The notes beneath the pieces are model-generated. The model was given only the letters and a program-made list of their open reading frames with translations, was not told the DNA's origin and did not search any database. Shown one piece after another: positions 10,303 to 62,765 of a stretch of DNA of 64,000 nt. The position numbers and the translations under genes are program-made. The DNA is taken from assembly GCF_001194135.2 (NCBI RefSeq), contig NC_068998.1:29364268-29428267 (forward strand), read 5' to 3'. Position 1 is the stretch's first letter. The number at the start of each line of letters is the position of its first letter. Source of the stretch: Octopus bimaculoides (Eukaryota).

Positions 10303-13300
10303 CTACACTAGCACAGCCCCATTCAATCTCAGCTTCTTTACAACAGTTATCCATCTTTACTCGAACACTCTTTGAGACAGGCACTTTTCTCCAGACGGAT
10401 CTTTCTCATCAGGTGGTAGTTAAAATGACTTACTAACTCGTGTCCGGAGATAAAGTTGCCTGTCTCAGTTCCCCTTCCACGCGTCATCCATACCGTGTCT
10501 TTCAGTATGGCTACTAAACAGGAAAAAGACGCCTCTCTTTCCTTATTAAAGGAAAAAGGCAGTACGATCTTAATGATGGACTCAGTCGATAGCCGTACTC
10601 TTTCCGTTTCTGACATCAGTTGTTCGACATAGGTTATCAGTCACCTCAATTCCCACAATGTACGAAGGCGTGCGTGACAGTTTCACTGATGCGCCCACAC
10701 CTCGGGCATGGAAGGGGTGTCAAACCGTGCTTTGACAACCTCTCTCGAACTGGTAAGGCCCATCGATAGCACAGCCAAACTAAGGATTTCTGGAAATTAT
10801 CCGGAAACCTCGGCCCGAATGTCCCTCCGAACAGCTGGTTCCCATCGAAGCCCAGAGCCTCCCTCCAGGACGTCGTCGGATTCGTGCTCTACCAACCCGC
10901 TATAAAAATCCGCTGTGGTAGCCCCGCTGCCGGTACTACTCACCCGGGAGAACAGAGTGTGTGCTTGTCTGCACTCCTTCTGCCATTCACCCATTCTAGG
11001 TTTTCCCGTAGGAAGGTTAATTGCGGAAAAAAGAACTTGACGTGCGGTGACCACACCTGTTCACCATCCAGGTAGAGCCAGAGATGTCTCAGCCTCAGCG
11101 CAAACTTGCGCATCATCAGCCAAGGCATCCCTAACCCACCTTTTAACGGTTTCTGGCAGCAGATAGAGCACCTCACTAGTGGTGGTTTCCTTTTCCACAA
11201 AAAGTGGAAAAGGATCCGTTCCAACTTGATCAGCCACATGCCGAGGCAAGGCACGATGCACCTGTACAACCTCCGCTCTCCCTAACAAGGATAGCGTCCT
11301 CCCAGAGCAGGTCTGGGTTATGGCCGTCACCTTGTCTGTGACCTAGCTCCAGTTTTTCTCCATCTGGAGATCTGGTCCAAACCAGACCACGAGCAGTTTA
11401 ACCGGGCCCTCCGTCCAACATCCAACGACGCTGTTGGGAGGCTTCGACTTGCCCCTCCAGGTGTCGAGTTGCAAGTCATTGATTTATCCTGGTTAAGTTT
11501 TGCCCCTGCCACCGCTTCGTATCTTTTAATGGCATCTTCTACACGATGTAGCTGCCCTTCATCAGACATGATGATGGTGACATCATCCGCATATGCCGTT
11601 GCTCCCTTACCGTAACATAGATCACGCGGTTCTCCCCCCGCATCCCCCAACCTCCGCAGCAGTAGCTTAAGAGCCAATACATACAGAAGCGGGGACAGGG
11701 AGCAACCCCGGCGAACGGCTTCGAGAAGAAACCGTTCACCTGGACGACTGAATCGATGTCGCTATATATAGCATTGATCCAGCCGTCGAGCCCAGTTCGA
11801 CCTATCGAATGCTTTAGACTGGTCTAAATTCACCAGTGCCCCACCCTTGCCAGGAACTTTAGTAACCCTCTCTATGGTGTAGCACATGAGGTGAAGGTTG
11901 TTATGTGTCGTCCTTCCTAGGATGGCGCATGTCTACGCCTCTCCCACCAAGTCGCCTTCGACAAGCCTCACTATCTTGGCTAACACCTTGACCAAAATCT
12001 TTAACTCTGTATTTAGCAGAGTTATAGGCCTGAAATTATTAATGACTCCCCCCTTGTTCGGGTCCTTCCTGATCGGTGTTACTACTTCCCAACTCACAGA
12101 CTCGAACGTAGGGCAGGTAAACTCTACTTTCTCCCATTCTGTTGCCAGTTTGCGTATACAGCGTCCAATATGTTCCCGAACAAGTCTGGCATACTTTTAT
12201 AAAATTCGTATAGTAGACTATCCAGTCCCGGCGACTTGTCCCCGGTGCACTCAGAAAGCACCTCTATAACCTCCACAGCTGTGATCGGCCTTTCACAGCG
12301 CCCAGCCTCACGTACCGAGATACGCGGGCCGCTGGCCAGGAAATCCCGAAGGGCATCCCCGTAGTCCAGCGCCCCTCCCGAACAACGCGGCGAAGTGCTC
12401 GTGAAAGGCCTTTCCCATCTCTTCTTGTCCTTGGAACTCCCGTCCATGCTCATCTACCACAGACCTTATCGTAGCATCTATGCCACGTTGGGTTTCTACC
12501 GAGCGAGCCCACCCGAAAACGTTGATACCCTCGCGACCCAGTACACGTACTTTTGCCCGAACTCTGCATCCTTCATGTTTGGCATTGAGGTGTCGGTCCA
12601 AGGCCGATCTCGCCGCCAAAACTTGGAGTGCAGAGCCCTCTCTCAGCGCCTCGTCTAACGCCTTAACTAAACTCCTTTCTACTCTAGCCTGTTCTAGACT
12701 TAACAGTTTGCTAAATCTAATAAACTCAAGTTGAATGGCTCGTTTGAGGGCACACCACCACCGGTTATTTAACACAGTGCCAGTTAGTGCCCTCGTTGCT
12801 AACTCCTTAATCTGGCTACGGTAAGTTTCGCAAGCCAATAGGGATTTGTTCAACTTCCAGTAGCCAGACCCCTGTCTATGGACTTTATCTATATGCATCC
12901 TACACGTCACTAATTTGTGATCCGTGTAGGGTACATAGGTAAATTGTGGACAACTAAAACTAGACTTATCTCTAGAATTAACTATTATCCTATCTATATA
13001 AGACCTGATTGATCCGTCGTTATTACTCCAAGTCCACGTTGAAACGCTTGGATTCTCAAGTCTGTATCGATCTGCCAGCCTAAATCGCCTCAGCAAATCG
13101 ACGAGGCATGAGTTACATCTATCATTCGAGCCTACGCTATCCTGACGTGCATCCAGAATAGCATTAAAGTCTCCAAGCATAACTAGTGTCTTTGATGTCA
13201 CAAGAAAGTTCTCCAGGCGTCGATAGAAATTATTCTGTCTGCCTATCATGCCAGGCACGTAAATGCCAATCAACCTGAAGGCTTTACCTTTGAATGTTAG

Positions 13301-29499: not shown

Positions 29500-31300
29500 A
29501 TTTGATAGTTTTACATGGATGTTACTAAATGCTCTTCCAGCATGGGAATAAGTGGACTCATTGTGTGTAGTGATAGATGAACACTGGATAAAAATTGACA
29601 ACAATGTTTTTTGTCAGTGGTCAGCATTTAGAATGAAGAAATGTAAGGTAAAACTGAATGATGAAAAAGCAAGCTATGGCATGAAAAATGGCTTTCTGTT
29701 CTTCAACAAACTGAATTTGAAGGGCAATCCTGAAGAGCAGCTATTTTTATGCCAATACTTGTTCAGCATACCGGCTCATAATGTTATTGCTCAGCGTGTT
29801 TTCTCGTTAATGAATGTTTAATTGCCAAAAGAGCGTAATAAGTTGGATGCAACTTTAATAGAAGCGATGTTATACAGGTTGGAGCAGAGAGGACGGCCGT
29901 TTCTGAAAAATTCACAAAATCATTAATTTTTGCTGGAAACAAATTTTATTGACATCAATGTGTTCGTATTGAATTAGCATTTATCAAACTCAAGTGTGGG
30001 GAAAACAACATCCATCATGCGGTGTCCGTTTTCATTGATGCATTTCTGAAAGCGTTCTTGGAAGTTGGCCCCCTACTTTCTCCAGCATTGCTCTGTCGAT
30101 TTGAGCGACTTCCACGCGAATAGTTTCTTTTAAATCGTCCAATGTACGCAATGTACAGGGCTTATGCGCGTACACACGGGCCTTGAGGTTTCCCACTAGA
30201 AATNNNNNNNNNNNNNNNNNNNNNNNNNNNNNNNNNNNNNNNNNNNNNNNNNNNNNNNNNNNNNNNNNNNNNNNNNNNNNNNNNNNNNNNNNNNNNNNNN
30301 NNNNNGGGGGGGGGGAGAAATGTCAGCAAATGAGGTGGTAACCGAAGAGAGCGCGAAGAACGTCCATTGATGCACTGGCTGTGTGGGCCGTCGCCCCATC
30401 CTGCTGAAACAACGCGCGTCGAATAGGCATACGTTTTCGTCGTAATTCAGGGACAAAGTTGTTTATCATCTCGTTGTAACGCTCGGAGTTCATAGTAACA
30501 TTTTCTTTATTGTCATCAAAAAAGTAAGGATCAATGACGGCAGCTTTTCCAACAGCACACCAGACCTTCACTTTGGGGCTGTGCTCTGCTCTTTCGTGCA
30601 GTTCTCTTGGATTTTCAAGAGTCTAATAACGACAGTTCTGTTGATTTACCATGCCATTGAGATGAAAATGAGCTCCATCACTTATTAACAAAATGAGGTT
30701 GTTATTTGCCTCAAAAAGTGCTTCCATCTGATGTGCGAAGCTAAACCGCTGTGCATAGTCCCATGGTTCCAAATCTTGCCCAATTTGTATGGGTACGCCT
30801 TACCAATCGATTACCGATGCCCAGTTTAGTGGAATGCCTCCGAGCAGAGCGATTCGGACTCCGTATCAAAGCTTGTCAGACGCGTTCCACATTTTCCGGG
30901 TTCCGTACTGTTCGTGACACCCCCACTAATCCCCAATTCATTAGTGTACCTCGTGTACACTCACCCAACGAAGTTTGTGTTTCGGGTGGGAACAGCCTGA
31001 TTTCGGTGAATGTTGAAGTGACGCCGAAACTCACACTGAACTGCTGTGACAGACTCGTTATTCTTCACGTAACTGTCTTAGGCAAACACGCGATGCTCTA
31101 TCGTCCACAGCGTCATAGCTTCGCTGAAAAAAAAATGGTAAGACACCACGGACCGAATGGTACCTGTCGGACATATCTCCCACCCCATGGGGCTGAGTAA
31201 TAGCCATTTCAAAAACGTCCGTCCTCCTGCCCCACCCTGTATAAGAACCAAAACTGTCAGTACAAGGAATTTTGTAAGAACCTCATCAGTGAAATAAAAT
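29500..31300 (+). mobile_element. hAT transposase dimerisation-domain remnant, interrupted at 29875-31239
   Basis: LCQYLFSIPAHNVIAQRVFSLMNV..KERNKLD..IEAML; the frame resumes after the insert as YKNQNCQYKEFC. Confidence 0.75.
29875..31239 (-). mobile_element. Tc1/mariner-superfamily transposon, DD41D (rosa/Visitor)-like, inactive
   Basis: TIRs CAGGTTGGAGCAGAGAGGACGGCCGTTT and CAGGGTGGGGCAGGAGGACGGACGTTT; TA on both sides; YVKNNESVTAVQREFRRHFNI, SDGAHFHLNGMVNQQNCRY, KVWCAV, FQQDGATAHT. The third catalytic residue falls at the gap, so the subfamily is inferred. Confidence 0.9.
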
Positions 31301-34800: not shown

Positions 34801-35730
34801 ATATTATGTATCTTAATAGGAATAGTATTATTTGGCATATGTTCATTGTTGAAAACACTACCCCCCCCCCCNNNNNNNNNNNCATATATATATATATATA
34901 TATATATATTTAATAATGAGGGTAGAAATTGATATTAACCAATTAAAACCAGTGGCCTAGCATATTTAAAAAATCCGAAGATTAAAATTATATTACATAC
35001 AAAATTAAGAAGGATGACCACCAAAAGTGGACTCCTATATGTTAGAAATAGATGTCAAATCACCTAACCACGAAGAGTATGTTCTCAAGAAAAAAATTTC
35101 AGCAAGACGCCAGACTGTGAAAATGAGTAAGACAAATGAAAATATACGAAATAAAAAAACCATTACCTACGTACCAATGGTTTCACCTGTTAATATTTGT
35201 GTGTGTGTGTATATATATATAGGAGTCCACTTTTGGTGGTAATCCNNNNNNNNNNNNNNNNNNNNNNNNNNNNNNNNNNNNNNNNNNNNNNNNNNNNNNN
35301 NNNNNNNNNNNNNNNNNNNNNNNNNNNNNNNNNNNNNNNNNNNNNNNNNNNNNNNNNNNNNNNNNNNNNNNNNNNNNNNNNNNNNNNNNNNNNNNNNNNN
35401 NNNNNNNNNNNNNNNNNNNNNNNNNNNNNNNNNNNNNNNNNNNNNNNNNNNNNNNNNNNNNNNNNNNNNNNNNNNNNNNNNNNNNNNNNNNNNNNNNNNN
35501 NNNNNNNNNNNNNNNNNNNNNNNNNNNNNNNNNNNNNNNNNNNNNNNNNNNNNNNNNNNNNNNNNNNNNNNNNNNNNNNNNNNNNNNNNNNNNNNNNNNN
35601 NNNNNNNNNNNNNNNNNNNNNNNNNNNNNNNNNNNNNNNNNNNNNNNNNNNNNNNNNNNNNNNNNNNNNNNNNNNNNNNNNNNNNNNNNNNNNNNNNNNN
35701 NNNNNNNNNNNNNNNNNNNNNNNNNNNNNN

Positions 35731-36060
35731 TGGAGCACCACCTTTAGTCGAGCAAATCAACCCCAGGACTTATTCTTTGGAAGCCTAGTACTTATTCTAT
35801 CGGTCTCTTTTGCCGAACCGCTAAGTTACGGGGACGTAAACACACCACCATCGGTTGTCAAGAGATGGTGGGGGACAAACACAGACACATATATATACGA
35901 CAGGCTTCTTTCAGTTTCTGTCTACCAAATCCACTCACAAGGCTTTGGTCGGCCTGAGGCTATAGTAGAAGACACTTGCCCAAGGTGTCACGCAGTGGGA
36001 ATGAACCCGGAACCATGTGGTTGGTAAGCAAGCTACTTACCACACAGCCACTCCTGCGCC
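35731..36060 (-). mobile_element. tRNA-derived octopod SINE, well preserved
   Basis: Near-identical reverse complement of 43495-43845, including the head GGAGTGGCTGTGTGGTAAG...GGTTCCGGGTTCATTCCC. Confidence 0.95.
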
Positions 36061-43494: not shown

Positions 43495-43845
43495 GGAGTG
43501 GCTGTGTGGTGAGTAGCTTGCTTACCAACCACATGGTTCTGGGTTCAGTCCCACTGCGTGACACCTTGGGCAAGTGTCTTCTACTATAGCCTCGGGCCGA
43601 CCATTGCCTTGTGAGTGGATTTGGTAGACGGAAACTGAAAGAAGCCCGTCGTATATATGTATATATATGTATGTATGTGTGTGTATATGTCTGTGTTTGT
43701 CCCCCCAACATCGCTTGACAACCGATGCTGGTGTGTTTACGTCCCTGTAACTTAGCGGTTCGGCAAAAGAGACCGATAGAATAAGTACTAAGCTTCCAAA
43801 GAGTAAGTCCTGGGGTCGATTTGCTCGACTAAAGTGTAAAAGAGA
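43495..43845 (+). mobile_element. Full-length tRNA-derived octopod SINE (OR/OK-type; exact family not determined)
   Basis: A-box-like TGGCTGTGTGG and B-box-like GGTTCAGTCCC head, internal (TA/TG)n tract, conserved body; at least eight related copies in this window. Confidence 0.95.
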
Positions 43846-45496: not shown

Positions 45497-48400
45497 ATGG
45501 ACCATGTTAAATACAATAGCAGCAGCAACAACAGCAGATGCTCACCATTACCCCCTATAGGCAAACTACAATCACCTGTACAGAACAATAGCAATGGTGA
45601 TAATACTCTTGGCAGCATCAGCAGCAATGGTCGCCACAGCAAGCCTCTCTACCATCACAGCTATCTTAGCAGTAAATCTAGTGTCTCTATGACTGGCGTT
45701 AAAAACTTGAAGAACACCTGTGGTAAATTCAGTGGCAGCAGTAGTCTGTTAAATGGGGCTACAGGCAGTGGTGGTAGTGATGGTGGTAGTGCATACAGTG
45801 TGTCAATGAAGGCCAACAGTAGCTACTTGAAACTCTATGGCACTGCCAGTCACAATAACAGCATCAGTTCATCATTGACAAATGCAGTTTCTGGTAACAG
45901 TCACTGCAGTCAACAGCAACTGCAACAGCGGCAGCAGCAGCAGGCAGTGGCCACAATAGCTACTTCAAATGCAGTCGTCAAAACAAACAGTCCAAATATA
46001 AACCTAGTTCTGAATCCAAAACCAATATTGGAAGCTGCAGCAGAGAAAGAGAAAGTACAAGAAAAAATGGGAAATGGCAATGATGACGATGACGACGACG
46101 ACGACGAAGATGATGGTGTTGACGATGATGATGATGATGATGACGATGACGATGATGACGATGATGATAATCATGATGATGATGGAGGAGGAGAGGAAAT
46201 GGGAAAAAGTGATAAAAAATTGGAAGGAATGATTGAAAATGATGTAAAAGTAGAGAAAGAGGAGCAGACAGAGGGTGGAGACAAGCAACTCCAACCAAAT
46301 AACAACACCCCAAATACAGGTAAAAGTAGTAGTACTGTTTCTGTTGATGGTGGTGCTACAGCATCTAGTCTCAGTCTGAAGGAAAGAGAAAGCATCTATG
46401 AGTGGTCATATGATGAACCAGAGGAGGAAAGCAACCAGCCATACAAAACTAAGTACCAATTGTTCTCACATCTACGCAAGAGCAACATTGATCGACCATT
46501 CAAATGTGTGCACTGCGAGAAGTGCTTTGCAACTACCTCACACTTGAAGTCACATGTGCGCACACATACAGGGGAAAAGCCACACAAATGTCACAAGTGC
46601 CCACGTGCATTCTCAGAACAGTCGTCACTGAAGAGGCATTTGCGTCTGCACAGCGGAGAGCGTCCATATGTCTGCCTGCACTGCAGGGAGTCATTCTACA
46701 ACCAAACTTCGCTGAAAAACCACCTGGCCAAGCACACAGGCGAGAAGCCATATAAGTGTCTAAAATGCCAAAAGTCCTTTATTCATGCCTCCCACTTGAA
46801 GTCACATCTGCGCACCCATACGGGTGAAAAACCTTTCATGTGTCTCGAGTGCAACCGACCGTTTTCAGAGCGCACATCATTACGCCGCCACATGCGTATC
46901 CACACAGACGAGAAACCATACACTTGCAAGCAGTGTGGCAAAGCTTTTCATAACCAGTCTTCACTGAAATATCATGTTACTAGCCATGACTCACAAAACA
47001 ATGACCAGAGCAACAACACTGAGGACGGTAAGGACAATAACAAAAAAAAAAACAACCGTTCTGCAAAAGCTAACAAATCAAAACGAGGTGGAACTCGAAC
47101 TAATGTAAAAGGTACATTTAAATGCAAAGAATGCAACAAGTCATATGTTGATGAATCAAACCTGAAGCGACATACTTCTTTACACTCAGGAGAGCGATCT
47201 TTCAAGTGTTTACGTTGTGACAAGGCTTTCTTTAGCCAAGCTGGTCTTCAACAGCATGTACGTACTCACACTGGGGAGAAACCATATTTATGTGTCCATT
47301 GCAGCAAGAAGTTTTCACAGCATTGTGATCTGAAGCGACACCTACGTACCCACACAGGAGTACGTCCACATCAATGTCCTCATTGTGAAAAAGTATTTTG
47401 TGAGCACTCTTCTCTAAAGAATCATTTAGCTACTGTCCACACAAGCAAAGAACAGCAGTCTGAACTGTGGCACTGTTCTTACTGCGCTGAAAGCTTTCCT
47501 GATGAGCTGACACTTCAACAGCACATGCATAGTGCACATAATGCTACAACCTTACAACCTCCTACTGATGAGAGCTCTGTGCAACGAAGTACAACACCAT
47601 TGAGGTGCAGTGAGTGCGGTAAAGATTTTTCGCAGAGTTCTCAATTAGAAGAACATTTCTCTGCATGTCATCAGCCTACCAACAAAAAGATTACTTCATC
47701 TCCCAGTAACCCTGTTAACACATTGAGCCAAAAGTCACCTTTCACATGTGTCTATTGTGGAAAGGCATTCAGCCATCGCACTTCTCTCCAACGCCACATT
47801 CGCATCCACACGGGTGACAATCTGTACAAGTGTACTCAGTGCAGCAAATCATTTTGTCAGAAGTCCTCCTATGAGTATCACATTACCATTCACTCAGGAA
47901 TTAAACCTTATGTGTGTGTCACGTGTGGTAAAGGATTTGCACATCAGTATGGGTTGCATCGTCATGTACGTACACATGCTGCAGAGGTTGCAGCTGAGGA
48001 TGCCTCAAACAACTTGAACATTTTAGCTAAAAAAGAAGATGAGGATGAGGATGATGATGACGATGATGACGATGATGATGACGATGATGATGATGACAAT
48101 GATGATGACGATGATGAGGACGATGACGATGATAATGATGATGATGATGACAAAAACAATGGCAATAATAATGATAGCAATAAAAATAACAATATTCAGA
48201 TGGATACATTGCAAATATCAAAATCTGCTTTAATTTCAAATCCTTCCCAAACTGTGTCTAATGGGTCAAAGACAGGTCCTTTGGCGCATCCACCTCACTC
48301 ATCACACTCCTCACATAGGCATTTACCTATTCATCTTAATCAGTCACAACAGCAACAAAATTCTCAACAAAAACAGCCCTGTTTAAACTCACAGCAAGCA

Positions 48401-48565
48401 CTCCATCATCAGCAGCATCATCACCATCATCAACAACAATCACAAATTCAGCATCAACAACAACAGCAGCAGCAAGTAACTGGACAACAACAGAATTATG
48501 ACAATGTTGATTTTAACCTTTGTTTGGCTACAAATATTTCTATCAACTCCACTTCTACAAGCTGA
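45497..48565 (+). CDS. Multi-C2H2 zinc-finger transcription factor, 1022 aa, uninterrupted ORF
   Basis: 15 CX2CX12HX3-4H fingers in clusters (6 + 4 + 2 isolated + 3) with TGEKP/SGERP linkers; Ser/Asn-rich N-terminus; poly-Asp at 46082-46183 and 48035-48151; Gln/His-rich C-terminus; in-frame upstream stop at 45428. Confidence 0.97.
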   Translation: MDHVKYNSSSNNSRCSPLPPIGKLQSPVQNNSNGDNTLGSISSNGRHSKPLYHHSYLSSKSSVSMTGVKNLKNTCGKFSGSSSLLNGATGSGGSDGGSAYSVSMKANSSYLKLYGTASHNNSISSSLTNAVSGNSHCSQQQLQQRQQQQAVATIATSNAVVKTNSPNINLVLNPKPILEAAAEKEKVQEKMGNGNDDDDDDDDEDDGVDDDDDDDDDDDDDDDDNHDDDGGGEEMGKSDKKLEGMIENDVKVEKEEQTEGGDKQLQPNNNTPNTGKSSSTVSVDGGATASSLSLKERESIYEWSYDEPEEESNQPYKTKYQLFSHLRKSNIDRPFKCVHCEKCFATTSHLKSHVRTHTGEKPHKCHKCPRAFSEQSSLKRHLRLHSGERPYVCLHCRESFYNQTSLKNHLAKHTGEKPYKCLKCQKSFIHASHLKSHLRTHTGEKPFMCLECNRPFSERTSLRRHMRIHTDEKPYTCKQCGKAFHNQSSLKYHVTSHDSQNNDQSNNTEDGKDNNKKKNNRSAKANKSKRGGTRTNVKGTFKCKECNKSYVDESNLKRHTSLHSGERSFKCLRCDKAFFSQAGLQQHVRTHTGEKPYLCVHCSKKFSQHCDLKRHLRTHTGVRPHQCPHCEKVFCEHSSLKNHLATVHTSKEQQSELWHCSYCAESFPDELTLQQHMHSAHNATTLQPPTDESSVQRSTTPLRCSECGKDFSQSSQLEEHFSACHQPTNKKITSSPSNPVNTLSQKSPFTCVYCGKAFSHRTSLQRHIRIHTGDNLYKCTQCSKSFCQKSSYEYHITIHSGIKPYVCVTCGKGFAHQYGLHRHVRTHAAEVAAEDASNNLNILAKKEDEDEDDDDDDDDDDDDDDDDNDDDDDEDDDDDNDDDDDKNNGNNNDSNKNNNIQMDTLQISKSALISNPSQTVSNGSKTGPLAHPPHSSHSSHRHLPIHLNQSQQQQNSQQKQPCLNSQQALHHQQHHHHHQQQSQIQHQQQQQQQVTGQQQNYDNVDFNLCLATNISINSTSTS

Positions 48566-53747: not shown

Positions 53748-54100
53748 ATCTTTCATTTTGTTTTTGTCATTAGACTGCAGCCATGCTGGGTTACTAACTT
53801 GAAGAATTTTTAGTTGAATGAATTGACCCCAGTACTTATCCTTTTTAAGCCTGGTACTTATTCTATTAGTCTCTTTTGCTGGATTAAGTTACAGGAACAT
53901 AAGCACACCAATACCAGTTGTCAAACGGTTGTAGGGAACATAGATATATGCATATATGATGGACTTCTTTCTGTTTCTATCTACCGAGTCCACTCACAAG
54001 GCTTTGGTCGTCAGCCTGAGGCTAGAGTAGAAGACACTTGCCCAAAGTGTCACACAGTGAGACTGAACCCAGAACCATGAGATTGAGTAGCACAGTCATG
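53748..54100 (-). mobile_element. Diverged tRNA-derived SINE
   Basis: Reverse-complement similarity to 43495-43845 (CCACTCACAAGGCTTTGGTCG, GAAGACACTTGCCCAA, GACTGAACCCAGAACCATG). Confidence 0.85.
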
Positions 54101-54104
54101 CCTA

Positions 54105-54920
54105 CGAACAGCCATGCTACATGGCAGTGAAACATCGGCCATAACTGCTGAGGACATGCGTAAGCTCGCAAGGAATGAAGCCAGTATGCTCCGATGGATG
54201 TGTAATGTCAGTGTGCATACTTGGCAGAGTGTAAGTACCTTGAGAGAAAAGTTGAACCTAAGAAGCATCAGTTGTGGTGTGCAAGAGAGACGATTGCGTT
54301 GGTATGGTCATGTGGCGAGAATGGATGAGGATAGCTGTGTGAAAAAGTGCCATACCCTAGCAGTTGAGGGAACCTGTGGAAGGTGGGACAAGGTGGTGAA
54401 GCACAACCCTCGAACATTAGGCCTCACCGAGACCTTTGGAAATACGCAATGCGTGAGAAGACCCGGCAAGCCAAGTGAGACCATAACCCATAGCCTATGC
54501 CAGGGGTGTAACCAACCCACTTATGCGTACCTTTCCTTCATTGGACACTAAATTCTGCCTGTGAAGACCTGTTGAGGCAAGTGAAATTGAAATCGAATCA
54601 AATTCGATGACTGGCACCTGTGCCAGTGGAGCTAAGAGCACCATCCGAGTGTGATCGTTGCCAGTGCAGCGGACCAGCTTCCGTGTCTGTGGCACGTGAA
54701 AAATCATTCGAACGAGGTCGTTGCCAGTTCTGCCTGACTGGCTCGTAAAAGCACCCACTACACTCTTGGAGTGGTTGGCATTAGGAAGGGCATCCAGCTG
54801 TAGAAACTCTGCTGGATCAGATTGGAGCCTGGTGCAGCCATTTGGTTCACCAGTCCTCACTCAAATCATCCGACCAATGCTAGCATGGAAAGCGGACGTT
54901 AAACAATGATGATGATGATG
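54105..54920 (+). mobile_element. 5'-truncated RTE LINE: ORF C-terminus, 3'UTR and (ATG)n tail
   Basis: MLHGSETS..RKLARNEASMLRWMC..LREKL..VQERRLRWYGHVARM; ends GCATGGAAAGCGGACGTTAAACAATGATGATGATG. Confidence 0.95.
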
Positions 54921-55354
54921 ATATATACATACACATATCTCAGATCAAATGATGGATGATCAAGATGAATAACAATACAACTTACTGTTCCATTCAGCAT
55001 AGAAAACTGAATATTACAATAGACACTGATGAGTGTGTAGATATGCTTTTGTTGGTTTCAATCATTGGAAAGTGGTTCTGCTAAAATATTAACTGAAGAG
55101 TTTCCTTTTAGTTCTTATTTCAGACTTGTACTTATTTTGTCAATTTCTATGAAATATTGAACATAAATATAGCTCCAGAACACATAAATATTTGCATATT
55201 TGTATGCATGATTGTGTGTTATGTGTGTGTGTCTATCCCCCATCACCATTTGACAACTGGTGTTAGTGTGTATTGTCCCCATAACTTAGCGGATCAACAA
55301 AAGATATTCCTGGAGTTGATTTGTTCAAATAAAACCTATTCAAGNNNNNNNNNN

Positions 55355-56313
55355 GACAGCTGTTTTGATTCAATAATCTTTAGATAATTAATTTATAAAA
55401 TTAAAATCATTATAAGATGAATCTCTTCAGAGGTAGTAAAGATATACCGATTAGAAATATATGTTGAGATAACAGCTATAAACTGTTAACTGATAGCATA
55501 TATACAAAAAGAGCCAGTTATAGAAGGCCTCAATCCAACATGGGGGGGAGGAGAAGGTAGTGTATATTTTATGTCTTAAAGAAAGAAAAGAAGAGATTAA
55601 TATAATATCATAGGATATTGAGAAGGAGAAAAAGCAAAAGAAGAAAACTGCTTGTATATATAAATATATAATAATGCCATATAATATCATACTTATCTAT
55701 AATACTGCAATACAAAAAATTTAAATTACGTAGAAGCAAACCGTGGCAATTATATATTAACCGAAGTTATCAGAAAGATATAAATAATTTCTAAATATAA
55801 TAATAACTTATTGTTTATGTTTATAATAATAATGAAATAAAAACATTATTATAAACATAAACAATAAGTTATTATTATATTTAGAAATTATTTATATCTT
55901 TCTGATAACTTCGGTTAATATATAATTGCCACGGTTTACTTAATTAAAAATTTTTTGTATTGCAGTATTATAGATAAGTATGATATTATATGGCATTATT
56001 ATATATTTATATATACAAGCGGTTTTCTTCTTTTGCTTTTTCTCCTTCTCAATATCCTATGATATTATATTAATCTCTTTTCTTTCTTTAAGACATAAAA
56101 TATACACTACCTTCTCCCCCGCCCCCATGTTGGATTGAGGCCTTCTATAACTGGCTCTTTTTGTATATATGCTATCAGTTAACAGTTTATAGGTGTTATC
56201 TCAACATATATTTCTAATCAGTATATCTTTACTACCTCTGAAGAGATTCATCTTATAATGATTTTAATTTTATAAATTAATTATCTAAAGATTATTGAAT
56301 CAAAACAGCTGTC
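55355..56313. repeat. Long inverted repeat (~470-bp arms, 14-bp spacer), probably two inverted PLE terminal-repeat copies
   Basis: 55355-55830 is the reverse complement of 55845-56313, with a few substitutions and small indels; spacer AATGAAATAAAAAC. Confidence 0.95.
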
Positions 56314-56500
56314 AGAGATGTTGTCATATTTTATAATTAATAAATAATATTTCATTAATTACCTCTCCTTATTCTTTAAATATATAAATATATGAACCAC
56401 GGCTTATATGGTTACCTTATAGTTGAACTTTCTATGGATTGGTATCTAACCAGTATTTTCATTAGATTTTATTCTCCCTTAGTTAGGTTTATAACTTTAC

Positions 56501-56535
<35 letters not shown>

Positions 56536-56850
56536 CAATGTTAATTCTCTAAATGAAGTATTAACAGTAACTGCACGATAAAGTGTAGTATATTGCCACT
56601 TAAGTGTGGCTGACCCCTAGGGGTGGATGTTACTGTTGCTTTTAGCCCCAGGAGGACATCTCCTCCAGCTGGAGGAGATGTCNNNNNNNNNNNNNNNNNN
56701 NNNNNNNNNNNNNNNNNNNNNNNNNNNNNNNNNNNNNNNNNNNNNNNNNNNNNNNNNNNNNNNNNNNNNNNNNNNNNNNNNNNNNNNNNNNNNNNNNNNN
56801 NNNNNNNNNNNNNNNNNNNNNNNNNNNNNNNNNNNNNNNNNNNNNNNNNN

Positions 56851-57009: not shown

Positions 57010-57230
57010 CTTGTATTTGTGTGTGTGTGTGTGTGTGTCTTTGTGTCTGTGTTTGTCTCCCACCACTGCTTGACAATCAGTGTTGGTGTGTTTATGTTCC
57101 CATAACTTAGTATATTGGCAAGAGGCCAATATATGAAGTACCAAGCTTTAAAAAAATAAATACTGGGTTGATTCATTTGATTAAGTATGGTCACAGTCTA
57201 ATGACTAAAACAAGTAAAAGATAAAAGATA
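57010..57230 (+). mobile_element. SINE 3' half
   Basis: GTGTCTGTGTTTGTCTCCCACCACTGCTTGACAATCAGTGTTGGTGTGTTTATG...GACTAAAACAAGTAAAAG. Confidence 0.8.
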
Positions 57231-60470: not shown

Positions 60471-61194
60471 CACTCAGCTTGGAATTGTTGATAAAAATGT
60501 ATTTGTGAATTTTATTGGTTTGGACATCACAAGGATTTAAACATAATAGGAGTGAGATGAAATGACATGAGAATTAAAGCTAGGAAAGAAAAACAAAATT
60601 GCTTAACGGAACATTTCTTCATTCACATCTGATTGGTATGGCTAGAAGCACTATGTTAAGTAATCCTAGTGAAACTGCTGTTTTTTTTGCCTTTAATTCT
60701 CACACCATTTCATCTCACCCTATTATGTCTAAAACCTTGTTATTTCCATGCTATTTGTTAAATAGTTAAGTTTAGCAATCTTAATGTTCAACTAAGCAAT
60801 TTCATTTTTCTTTTCTTGCTTTAATTCTCATGTCATTTCATCTTGCTCCTATTATGTCAAAAGCCTTGTTATTTCCTTGCTACATGTTAAATAACAGTTA
60901 AGCAATCCTAGTGAAAATCTGCTGTCTGTCTTTTTCACCTTTTTGTTTTGTTTGAATATTTTCTCCTAGAACCTCTGTACTGGAAACCTGTTCAGAATAC
61001 TCTCTTTCACCTCCTGCTTCTATTCTGTGGTCAATACCACTGCCTTGTCTCCTAGTAAATGTGGCAAATGTGAAGTGAATAAATGATGATGAATTAAATG
61101 CAGGTTGAGACCTATTTGGACTTTTATGATATGTTTGGGAAACGTCCATGCAAACTTTCTTTTCAGATGCAGAATGCTGTCCCCCATTACTGTA

Positions 61195-62765
61195 TTCCCT
61201 CTAGCCACTCCTTCCTTACCCTCAGAGTTGGCACACTCAATGTGGGCACATTAAAAGGTAGGTTTGGTGAGATTGTTGAGATGTTTAGAAAGAGAGCCTG
61301 GATAAGATGCAGTTTGGTTTCATGCCTGGGAGAAGCATGACTGATGTTATATTCCTGGTAAGGCAGCATCAGGAGGAGTATTGAGCCAAAAATGAACCTT
61401 TGTACTTTGCTTTTGTAGGCCTGGAGAAAGTCTTTGACAGGATTCCCTGCTCCCTTATCTGGTGGTCAATGTGGAAGCTAGGGATAAATGAGTGGTTGAT
61501 GAGAGCTGTACAAGCCATAAACAGGGATGCTGCCATTAAGGTGAAGATTGGCAATGAGTATAGCAATGAATTTAGTGTACAAGTAGTTCACCAAGGATCA
61601 GTTCTCAACCCCCTCTTGTTTATCATAGTGCCTCCAGGTATAACAAGGAATTAAAGACTTGCTGCCCTTAGGAGCTCCTCTACACTGATGACTTTGTTCT
61701 TATAGCTGAATCACTATCTACCTATAGAAGAAATTTCAGGTGTGGAAGCAAGGTTTGGAATCTAACGGCCTTTAGCAAAGGCCAAAGTCCCAGTAAGACA
61801 ATAGACAAATCACAGATCCCTTCAGAGTGATGACCCTGCTCAATTTGTAATAAGGGTGTTGGTAGAATTAGGAAAGTTAACAGAGAAAATAGTCTTTGTG
61901 TGTGGCATATGTGCTAGTACAATAAGCACTAAAAATGTGCATAGAAGAGACTTTCTCAAATGCTCAGGGGGCTCCTTAGCAGTGGAAGAGGAAGTTCTGA
62001 AAGCATAGTTGCTAGAATAAGAAGAGACTAGGCAAAGTTCAGAGAGCAACTACTTTTGTTAGTAACTAAGGGCCTATCCCACAGAGTGAAAGGCTGATTT
62101 TTATGTGTATATAGAGCTGTGCTACATGGCAGTGAAAATGGACTTTGATTACAGAGCACTTTGCAAAGGAAATGAAGCCAGCATGCTCCACTGGATGGGT
62201 AATGTCAGTGTAAATGATTTAAGAGGAAAACTGGGTATAAGAGACATCTGTTGTATGCAAGCGAGAAGACTGCTAGTATGGTCATGTGATGCACATGGAT
62301 GAGGACTTCTGTGTAAAGGTGCTGATCCCTAATTGTGGAGGGAACTTCTGGAAGAGGTAGCCTCAGGAAGACATGGAACAAAGTGGTGAGAAAGGATCAT
62401 CAGACACTAGGCTTCCCTGAGGAGATGACAAAGCACTGGGACTTGTGGTGATTTGCTCTATGTGAGAAGACAAGTCAAGCTAAGTAAAATCACAGCCACC
62501 ATACCTACAGGCATGTTCTTTATGGCCATGCACCCACTCCCTCTCTCAGCTGAGAGCTGCAGGGGCCAGTGCCATGTACTATGTGAAAGCACCCATGCCA
62601 GTGGCATGTAAAAAGCATCCGGCACACTCTGTAAAGTGGTTGGCATTAGGAAGGACATCCAGCCATAGAAACCATGCCAAAACAGACAATTGGAGTCTGG
62701 ACAGTTCTCCAGTTGGTTAACTCCTGTCAAACTGTCCAAACCATGCCAGCAATGATGATGATGAA
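61195..62765 (+). mobile_element. RTE LINE with large internal deletions, ending in an (ATG)n tail
   Basis: TLRVGTLNVGTLKGRFGEIVEM (APE N-terminus), FVGLEKVFDRIP, VHQGSVLNPLLFII, EASMLHWM, GRGSLRKTW, tail at 62745-62765. Confidence 0.9.

Follow-up and report, generated by a model that had tools for sequence, protein, structure and literature searches.

A near-perfect 959-bp palindrome at a contig edge in intergenic DNA of Octopus bimaculoides, a candidate inverted duplication

The window analysed here, a stretch of 64,000 nucleotides from Octopus bimaculoides (contig NC_068998.1 of GCF_001194135.2), contains an uninterrupted zinc-finger ORF on the forward strand (45497–48565), whose 1022-aa product carries multiple C2H2 fingers together with long poly-Asp and poly-Gln tracts. 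The best matches of this product were vertebrate zinc-finger proteins of the KRAB/SCAN type, at 30–40% identity confined to the finger arrays. The searches brought up no cephalopod orthologue, the full-protein search being dominated by vertebrate C2H2 matches and the cluster look-up being empty, and a protein search with the N-terminal 139 aa gave no matches. Two kinds of repeats occur elsewhere in the window. A SINE-like dispersed repeat of ~300 bp occurs in five copies 70–80% identical, two on the forward strand (35743–36023 and 53809–54085) and three on the reverse strand (43526–43833, 55185–55304 and 57012–57173), the last two of which flank the contig of the palindrome described below in the same orientation. 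In addition, three degenerate LINE-type fragments were detected: an APE-type endonuclease matching the Pfam family Exo_endo_phos on the reverse strand (12308–13273), a forward-strand ORF without Pfam match (54114–54551) whose 'RRLRWYGHVARM' motif we take to mark the C-terminal region of a LINE reverse transcriptase, and a further forward-strand fragment (61098–61654) with a weak match to RVT_1 (61400–61654). None of the three is a Penelope-like element.

The feature under study is an intergenic near-palindrome that spans 55355–56313 (959 bp). Repeat search and global alignment of arm against arm resolved it into a left arm of 476 nt on the forward strand (55355–55830, 74.8% AT), a spacer of 14 nt with the sequence AATGAAATAAAAAC (55831–55844), asymmetric and not palindromic in itself, and a right arm of 469 nt (55845–56313, 75.1% AT) that is the reverse complement of the left one; the centre is free of gaps. 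The length of 476 nt is a lower bound on the arm, which is cut by the contig edge, and the homology of the arms may in reality extend past the apparent outer boundary at 56313. The two arms match at 461 positions and differ by six substitutions (left-arm positions 55448, 55475, 55549, 55649, 55723 and 55737) and four indels, giving an identity of 98.7% without gap columns and 96.4% with them. All four indels sit in slippage-prone tracts: one nucleotide in a G run, the three nucleotides AAG (55588–55590) in an AAG-rich tract, one nucleotide in an A run and the six nucleotides ACGTAG (55728–55733). The differences are confined to the middle of the arms, leaving exact inverted runs of 93, 71, 58, 70 and 93 nt, so that the outermost and the innermost runs are both 93 nt long. 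Two of the three C/T differences between the arms are of the CpG/TpG type, with one CpG decayed in each arm.

The palindrome as a whole is 75.1% AT, against 62% in the window, and the proportion rises to 82–87% across the central 200 bp, the most AT-rich 100-bp segment reaching 87%. Folded as a single strand, the sequence gives one hairpin with a predicted energy of −706.9 kcal/mol, compared with −167 ± 7 for shuffled sequences (z = −80.7), and the palindrome is far beyond chance expectation. The first-pass annotation had described a palindrome of ~960 bp with two arms of ~470 bp and a 14-bp spacer, abutting a 10-N gap and lying about 7 kb downstream of the zinc-finger gene, and had noted that its arms differ by substitutions and indels and thus are no exact fold-back. 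Our alignment bears out this architecture and contains both examples of differences that had been quoted; the zinc-finger ORF ends 6.8 kb from the palindrome, and the caution then expressed over the gap was justified. The predicted fold likewise agrees with the earlier proposal that the locus would be prone to cruciform formation and could yield an RNA duplex of ~470 bp if transcribed or unwound. As to the CpG content, the observed/expected ratio is 0.54 in the palindrome and 0.32 in the neighbouring 19.6-kb contig (35731–55344), a difference that is not robust, as the palindrome holds only eight CpGs.

The left arm opens at the first base past the 10-N gap (55345–55354), and the whole palindrome occupies 72% of a contig of only 1328 bp (55355–56682) with gaps on both sides. 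Beyond the right arm, this contig continues into a unique flank (56314–56654) that is not mirrored on the left and does not resemble the end of the left-hand contig. The far end of the contig is formed by a perfect 28-nt palindrome (GACATCTCCTCCAG|CTGGAGGAGATGTC, 56655–56682), which the next gap, a run of 168 N (56683–56850), cuts 14 nt beyond its centre. This short palindrome may be all that the assembly shows of a second one, or it may mark where a k-mer walk came to a halt. The hexamer CAGCTG, a PvuII site found only 15 times in the window, occurs at 55357, 56306 and 56666. Each end of the 1328-bp contig carries palindromic sequence centred on this hexamer, and in both cases GAGATGT follows at the same offset; the first two sites lie within ACAGCTGT (55356–55363) and its mirror (56305–56312). 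The shared pattern may have arisen by chance or from a rule by which the k-mer walk stops, or it may point to a second palindrome missed by the assembly. Remnants of adapters at the contig ends were considered as well and rejected, since the Nextera mosaic-end sequence matches over only 5–6 nt.

Other gap edges in the window place these observations in context. The window contains nine N runs and about eight local inverted repeats that are not of low complexity and have exact arms of at least 20 nt. Three of these ~8 repeats are truncated by a gap, among them a 29-nt inverted repeat (35012–35040 and 35217–35245, 97% complementary and 176 nt apart) whose second arm, inside a contig of 363 bp, ends exactly where a 485-N gap opens at 35246. 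In this assembly, inverted repeats are therefore associated with the edges of gaps. The remaining contig ends lie at poly-C, poly-G and (AT)n/(TG)n tracts, as exemplified by 11 C (34861–34871) before an 11-N gap and 10 G (30306–30315) after a 102-N gap, from which it follows that gaps here mark DNA that is hard to sequence or to assemble. The pattern of contig ends fits an assembler that stops at difficult sequence. Duplicated flanks, direct or inverted, were seen at none of the gaps in the window, so that gaps here are not generally subject to a duplication artefact. At the 10-N gap, no overlap between the contigs was found, and the end of the left-hand contig is not a mirror of the right flank of the palindrome.

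The evidence for this sequence comes from a single source. Exact look-up of the zinc-finger ORF returned one record that encodes it, the chromosome CM046618.1 of the O. bimaculoides assembly GCA_001194135.2, in which the 23 kb around the ORF are identical to the window, gaps included; for the products of five other ORFs, from the arms and both flanks, exact look-ups found none on record. GCA_001194135.2 was obtained by rescaffolding the shotgun assembly of 2015 with Hi-C (PMC9068888), and that underlying assembly was built from short reads with Meraculous. Since the contigs of 2015 are reused, the chromosome-level version represents the same evidence and not an independent confirmation. Meraculous keeps only k-mers above a depth threshold that have high-quality unique extensions (PMC3158087), and it closes gaps by walking locally through the k-mers of reads that their mates have brought in.

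Searches for a coding or structural identity of the arms were negative throughout. No Pfam match was found in the arms, whose longest ORF comprises 79 aa, and no reverse transcriptase or GIY-YIG coding sequence lies in or adjoining the palindrome. A Penelope-like element, which the first-pass annotation had brought into connection with the palindrome, finds no footing in these results, with no ORF longer than 79 aa, no domain of the expected kind and retroelement fragments in the window that are all LINE-like. Scans of the region for Rfam families and tRNAs yielded no match above noise, and a tandem-repeat scan (TRF) of the arms detected only trivial two-copy repeats of 8–13 nt. Within the 61 kb of sequence in the window, there were no further copies of the arm and no homology of the arms to any gene or other sequence. 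Among metagenome contigs, an arm 33-mer had no match, and an arm 20-mer had two, of which the one inspected was a chance match of 24 nt in a contig of 66% GC. The last bases ahead of the gap (..CTATTCAAG) are not repeated in the right flank (AGAGATGT..), and the left flank itself is a gap (55345–55354). Judged on the sequence, there is no evidence for any recognisable transposon identity.

On balance, we lean towards the view that the palindrome is a real and fairly young inverted duplication in intergenic DNA. The ten separate differences between the arms, with CpG/TpG decay in each of them, bear the signature of germ-line mutation and not of one molecule read twice, in which case the arms would be identical. 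Given the depth and quality filters of Meraculous, which remove rare chimeric k-mers, both sets of variants and the junction of arm, spacer and arm should each have several reads behind them. The unbroken centre with its asymmetric spacer also favours a real repeat. The first-pass annotation had considered that two haplotypes might have been joined head-to-head, an idea that the amount of divergence disfavours: heterozygosity in O. bimaculoides is 0.08% (PMC7656900), and the substitution divergence of the arms (1.28%, besides the four indels) is ~16 times as high, so that an allelic origin of the arms is unlikely. Under a simple coalescent with this heterozygosity, the probability of at least six substitutions in 467 aligned bases is ~4e-4. 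The case has its weak points, namely a left arm that begins at the very edge of a tiny contig with two gaps, the palindromic far end of the same contig and a sequence source that consists of one short-read assembly, whose contigs the chromosome-level version reuses. Moreover, a palindrome is generally unstable in vivo when its arms measure several hundred bp and its spacer is shorter than 20 nt. As to the first of these points, Meraculous ends contigs where a repeat leaves into two contexts, so that a gap at the left arm is to be expected, and we propose that the gap at the left edge, a small one that resisted closure, is a consequence of the repeat and not evidence against the palindrome.

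An assembly artefact, with a single arm copy in the genome or with two that lie apart from each other, is the less probable but still serious reading. The assembler would have turned at a short natural hairpin near 55831–55844 and laid an allelic or paralogous version of the arm in reverse until the walk stopped, leaving a placeholder gap of 10 N. In agreement with this, the arm opens exactly at the contig edge behind a gap of minimum size, the other end of the small contig likewise turns back on itself over 14 nt, a third contig end (that at 35217–35245) is an inverted copy of nearby sequence, the local walk of Meraculous can recruit reads of either strand, and the exact runs at both arm ends, at 93 nt, are about one read length. 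Against it stand, besides the mutational spectrum, the k-mer filters and the low heterozygosity, the absence of duplicated flanks at every gap in the window and the number of conditions that have to coincide: a real central hairpin, reads that carry another, diverged form of the arm, and a true left flank that was lost altogether. Conceivable as it is, this model is less economical than a real repeat. Among real repeats, a mobile origin, by which the palindrome would be a self-complementary element of the foldback transposon type or a MITE with long terminal inverted repeats, appears rather improbable. Two terminal inverted repeats of ~476 bp would then enclose a loop of 14 nt, and the transposase would act in trans. 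The compact layout of two arms around a tiny loop and the repeat-rich surroundings, with SINE-like copies and LINE fragments, are consistent with such an origin, and so are the arm ends, which begin with CAG inside ACAGCTGT and bear what we presume to be a weak resemblance to hAT-type ends. The density of near-perfect local inverted repeats, which is unusually high in O. bimaculoides, points in the same direction; in Xenopus, the corresponding signal is due to a palindromic Harbinger element (PMC5625713). This origin is opposed by the absence of another copy from the 61 kb of sequence in the window, by a protein search with the 79-aa arm ORF that matched only the other arm in the protein collection, by metagenome contigs that gave only chance matches of 20–24 nt and by arms that have no tandem sub-repeats, unlike Drosophila FB elements; a target-site duplication is unreadable, as the left flank is a gap. 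None of these negatives is strong, the copy searches having covered the window, the protein collection and the metagenome contigs. It is very unlikely that the palindrome, while real, belongs to an undescribed family of long self-complementary elements which would account for O. bimaculoides having, among the animals surveyed, the highest density of near-perfect local dsRNA-forming loci, and that the locus is transcribed into a 470-bp hairpin and either hyper-edited by ADAR or diced into endo-siRNAs. Least probable of all is a functional hairpin-RNA locus, whose transcribed 470-bp duplex would feed endogenous siRNAs or serve as a regulated ADAR substrate. Such a role would draw on the predicted duplex only, together with the general abundance of hyper-editing at structures of this type in octopus, and against it count the lack of evidence for transcription, the lack of an Rfam family match and arms that resemble no potential target gene in the window. 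The accumulated indels bulge the duplex, compensating changes are neither needed nor seen, and the sequence is AT-rich, non-coding and intergenic.

If the palindrome is, as we favour, a real inverted duplication, a segment of at least 476 bp would have been duplicated in inverted orientation with 14 nt left between the copies, most likely through local fold-back or through template switching during repair or replication. The insertion of a self-complementary element seems less likely than this route; with the left flank missing and any target-site duplication unreadable, the sequence does not tell whether a fold-back or a transposon lies behind the palindrome. The copies would later have diverged by the six substitutions and four small indels. 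With the estimate for octopods given in PMC7656900, a mutation rate of 2.4e-9 per site and generation, K = 0.0128 would place the duplication ~2.7 million generations ago, or longer if the arms undergo gene conversion. We infer that both arms are present in the animal, where the palindrome is probably a passive structure without dedicated function. At the DNA level it could extrude a hairpin or cruciform, and, if it lies within a transcript, it would form a duplex of ~470 bp of the type that ADARs hyper-edit. Nothing ties the palindrome to the neighbouring zinc-finger gene.

Structures of this kind have precedents in the same genome. Porath et al. (2017) scored a 50-bp locus as dsRNA-forming when a reverse-oriented sequence more than 95% identical over at least 40 bp lies within ±2 kb, and found such partners for 0.44% of random loci in O. 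bimaculoides, an exceptionally high value among 19 species that was linked to very strong hyper-editing (PMC5625713). Near-perfect local inverted repeats are thus common in this genome and, as a class, have support at the RNA level. The palindrome, with exact runs of up to 93 nt and 98.7% identity, falls within this definition, and it resembles the loci of Porath et al. in coming from the same species and the same underlying assembly and in lying in a non-coding, repeat-rich region. Most of those loci are believed to consist of two dispersed repeats in inverted orientation, separated by a longer loop, whereas the palindrome is a single compact hairpin with a loop of 14 nt and a sequence that is unrepeated elsewhere in the window. 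If real, the locus would be another member of an inverted-repeat class already known to be abundant in this genome; whether real or an artefact, it does not represent a new kind of genetic element.

Likenesses to other systems are partial. The human palindromic AT-rich repeats PATRR11, PATRR22, PATRR17 and PATRR8 share with the palindrome a size of several hundred bp, a centre that is the most AT-rich part, near-symmetric arms, a predicted cruciform and a position at an assembly gap. PATRRs are more than 90% AT, nearly perfect and without a spacer, and the same technical difficulties have kept them out of the human reference (PMC4940405). Our palindrome is of comparable length (959 bp) but, with 75.1% AT, a 14-nt spacer and asymmetric indels, departs from this class in features that lower cruciform extrusion in PATRR alleles; on composition and spacer it was rejected as a PATRR. 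As in palindromic MITEs and Drosophila Foldback elements, the self-complementary unit folds with a short loop, although it is ~5 times longer than the ~200-bp Harbinger-derived element of Xenopus tropicalis. Membership in the Foldback family was rejected for want of tandem sub-repeats in the arms, and membership among Penelope-like elements for want of reverse transcriptase and GIY-YIG coding sequence in or between the inverted copies. With fold-back artefacts of assembly the palindrome has in common its start at a contig end beside a gap and the very short contig; it differs from them in that the arms are not identical, showing ten sites of difference with a mutation-like spectrum, and in that the assembler filters k-mers of low depth.

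The two main readings carry different consequences for cephalopod genomics. If the palindrome is an artefact, the counts of dsRNA-forming loci derived from this short-read assembly may be inflated at contig ends. If it is real, it would provide a defined example of the long near-perfect inverted repeats that are thought to drive the hyper-editing load of octopus, and a simple test locus in a cephalopod for the germ-line stability of a palindrome with a short spacer, for cruciform formation and for processing by ADAR or Dicer.
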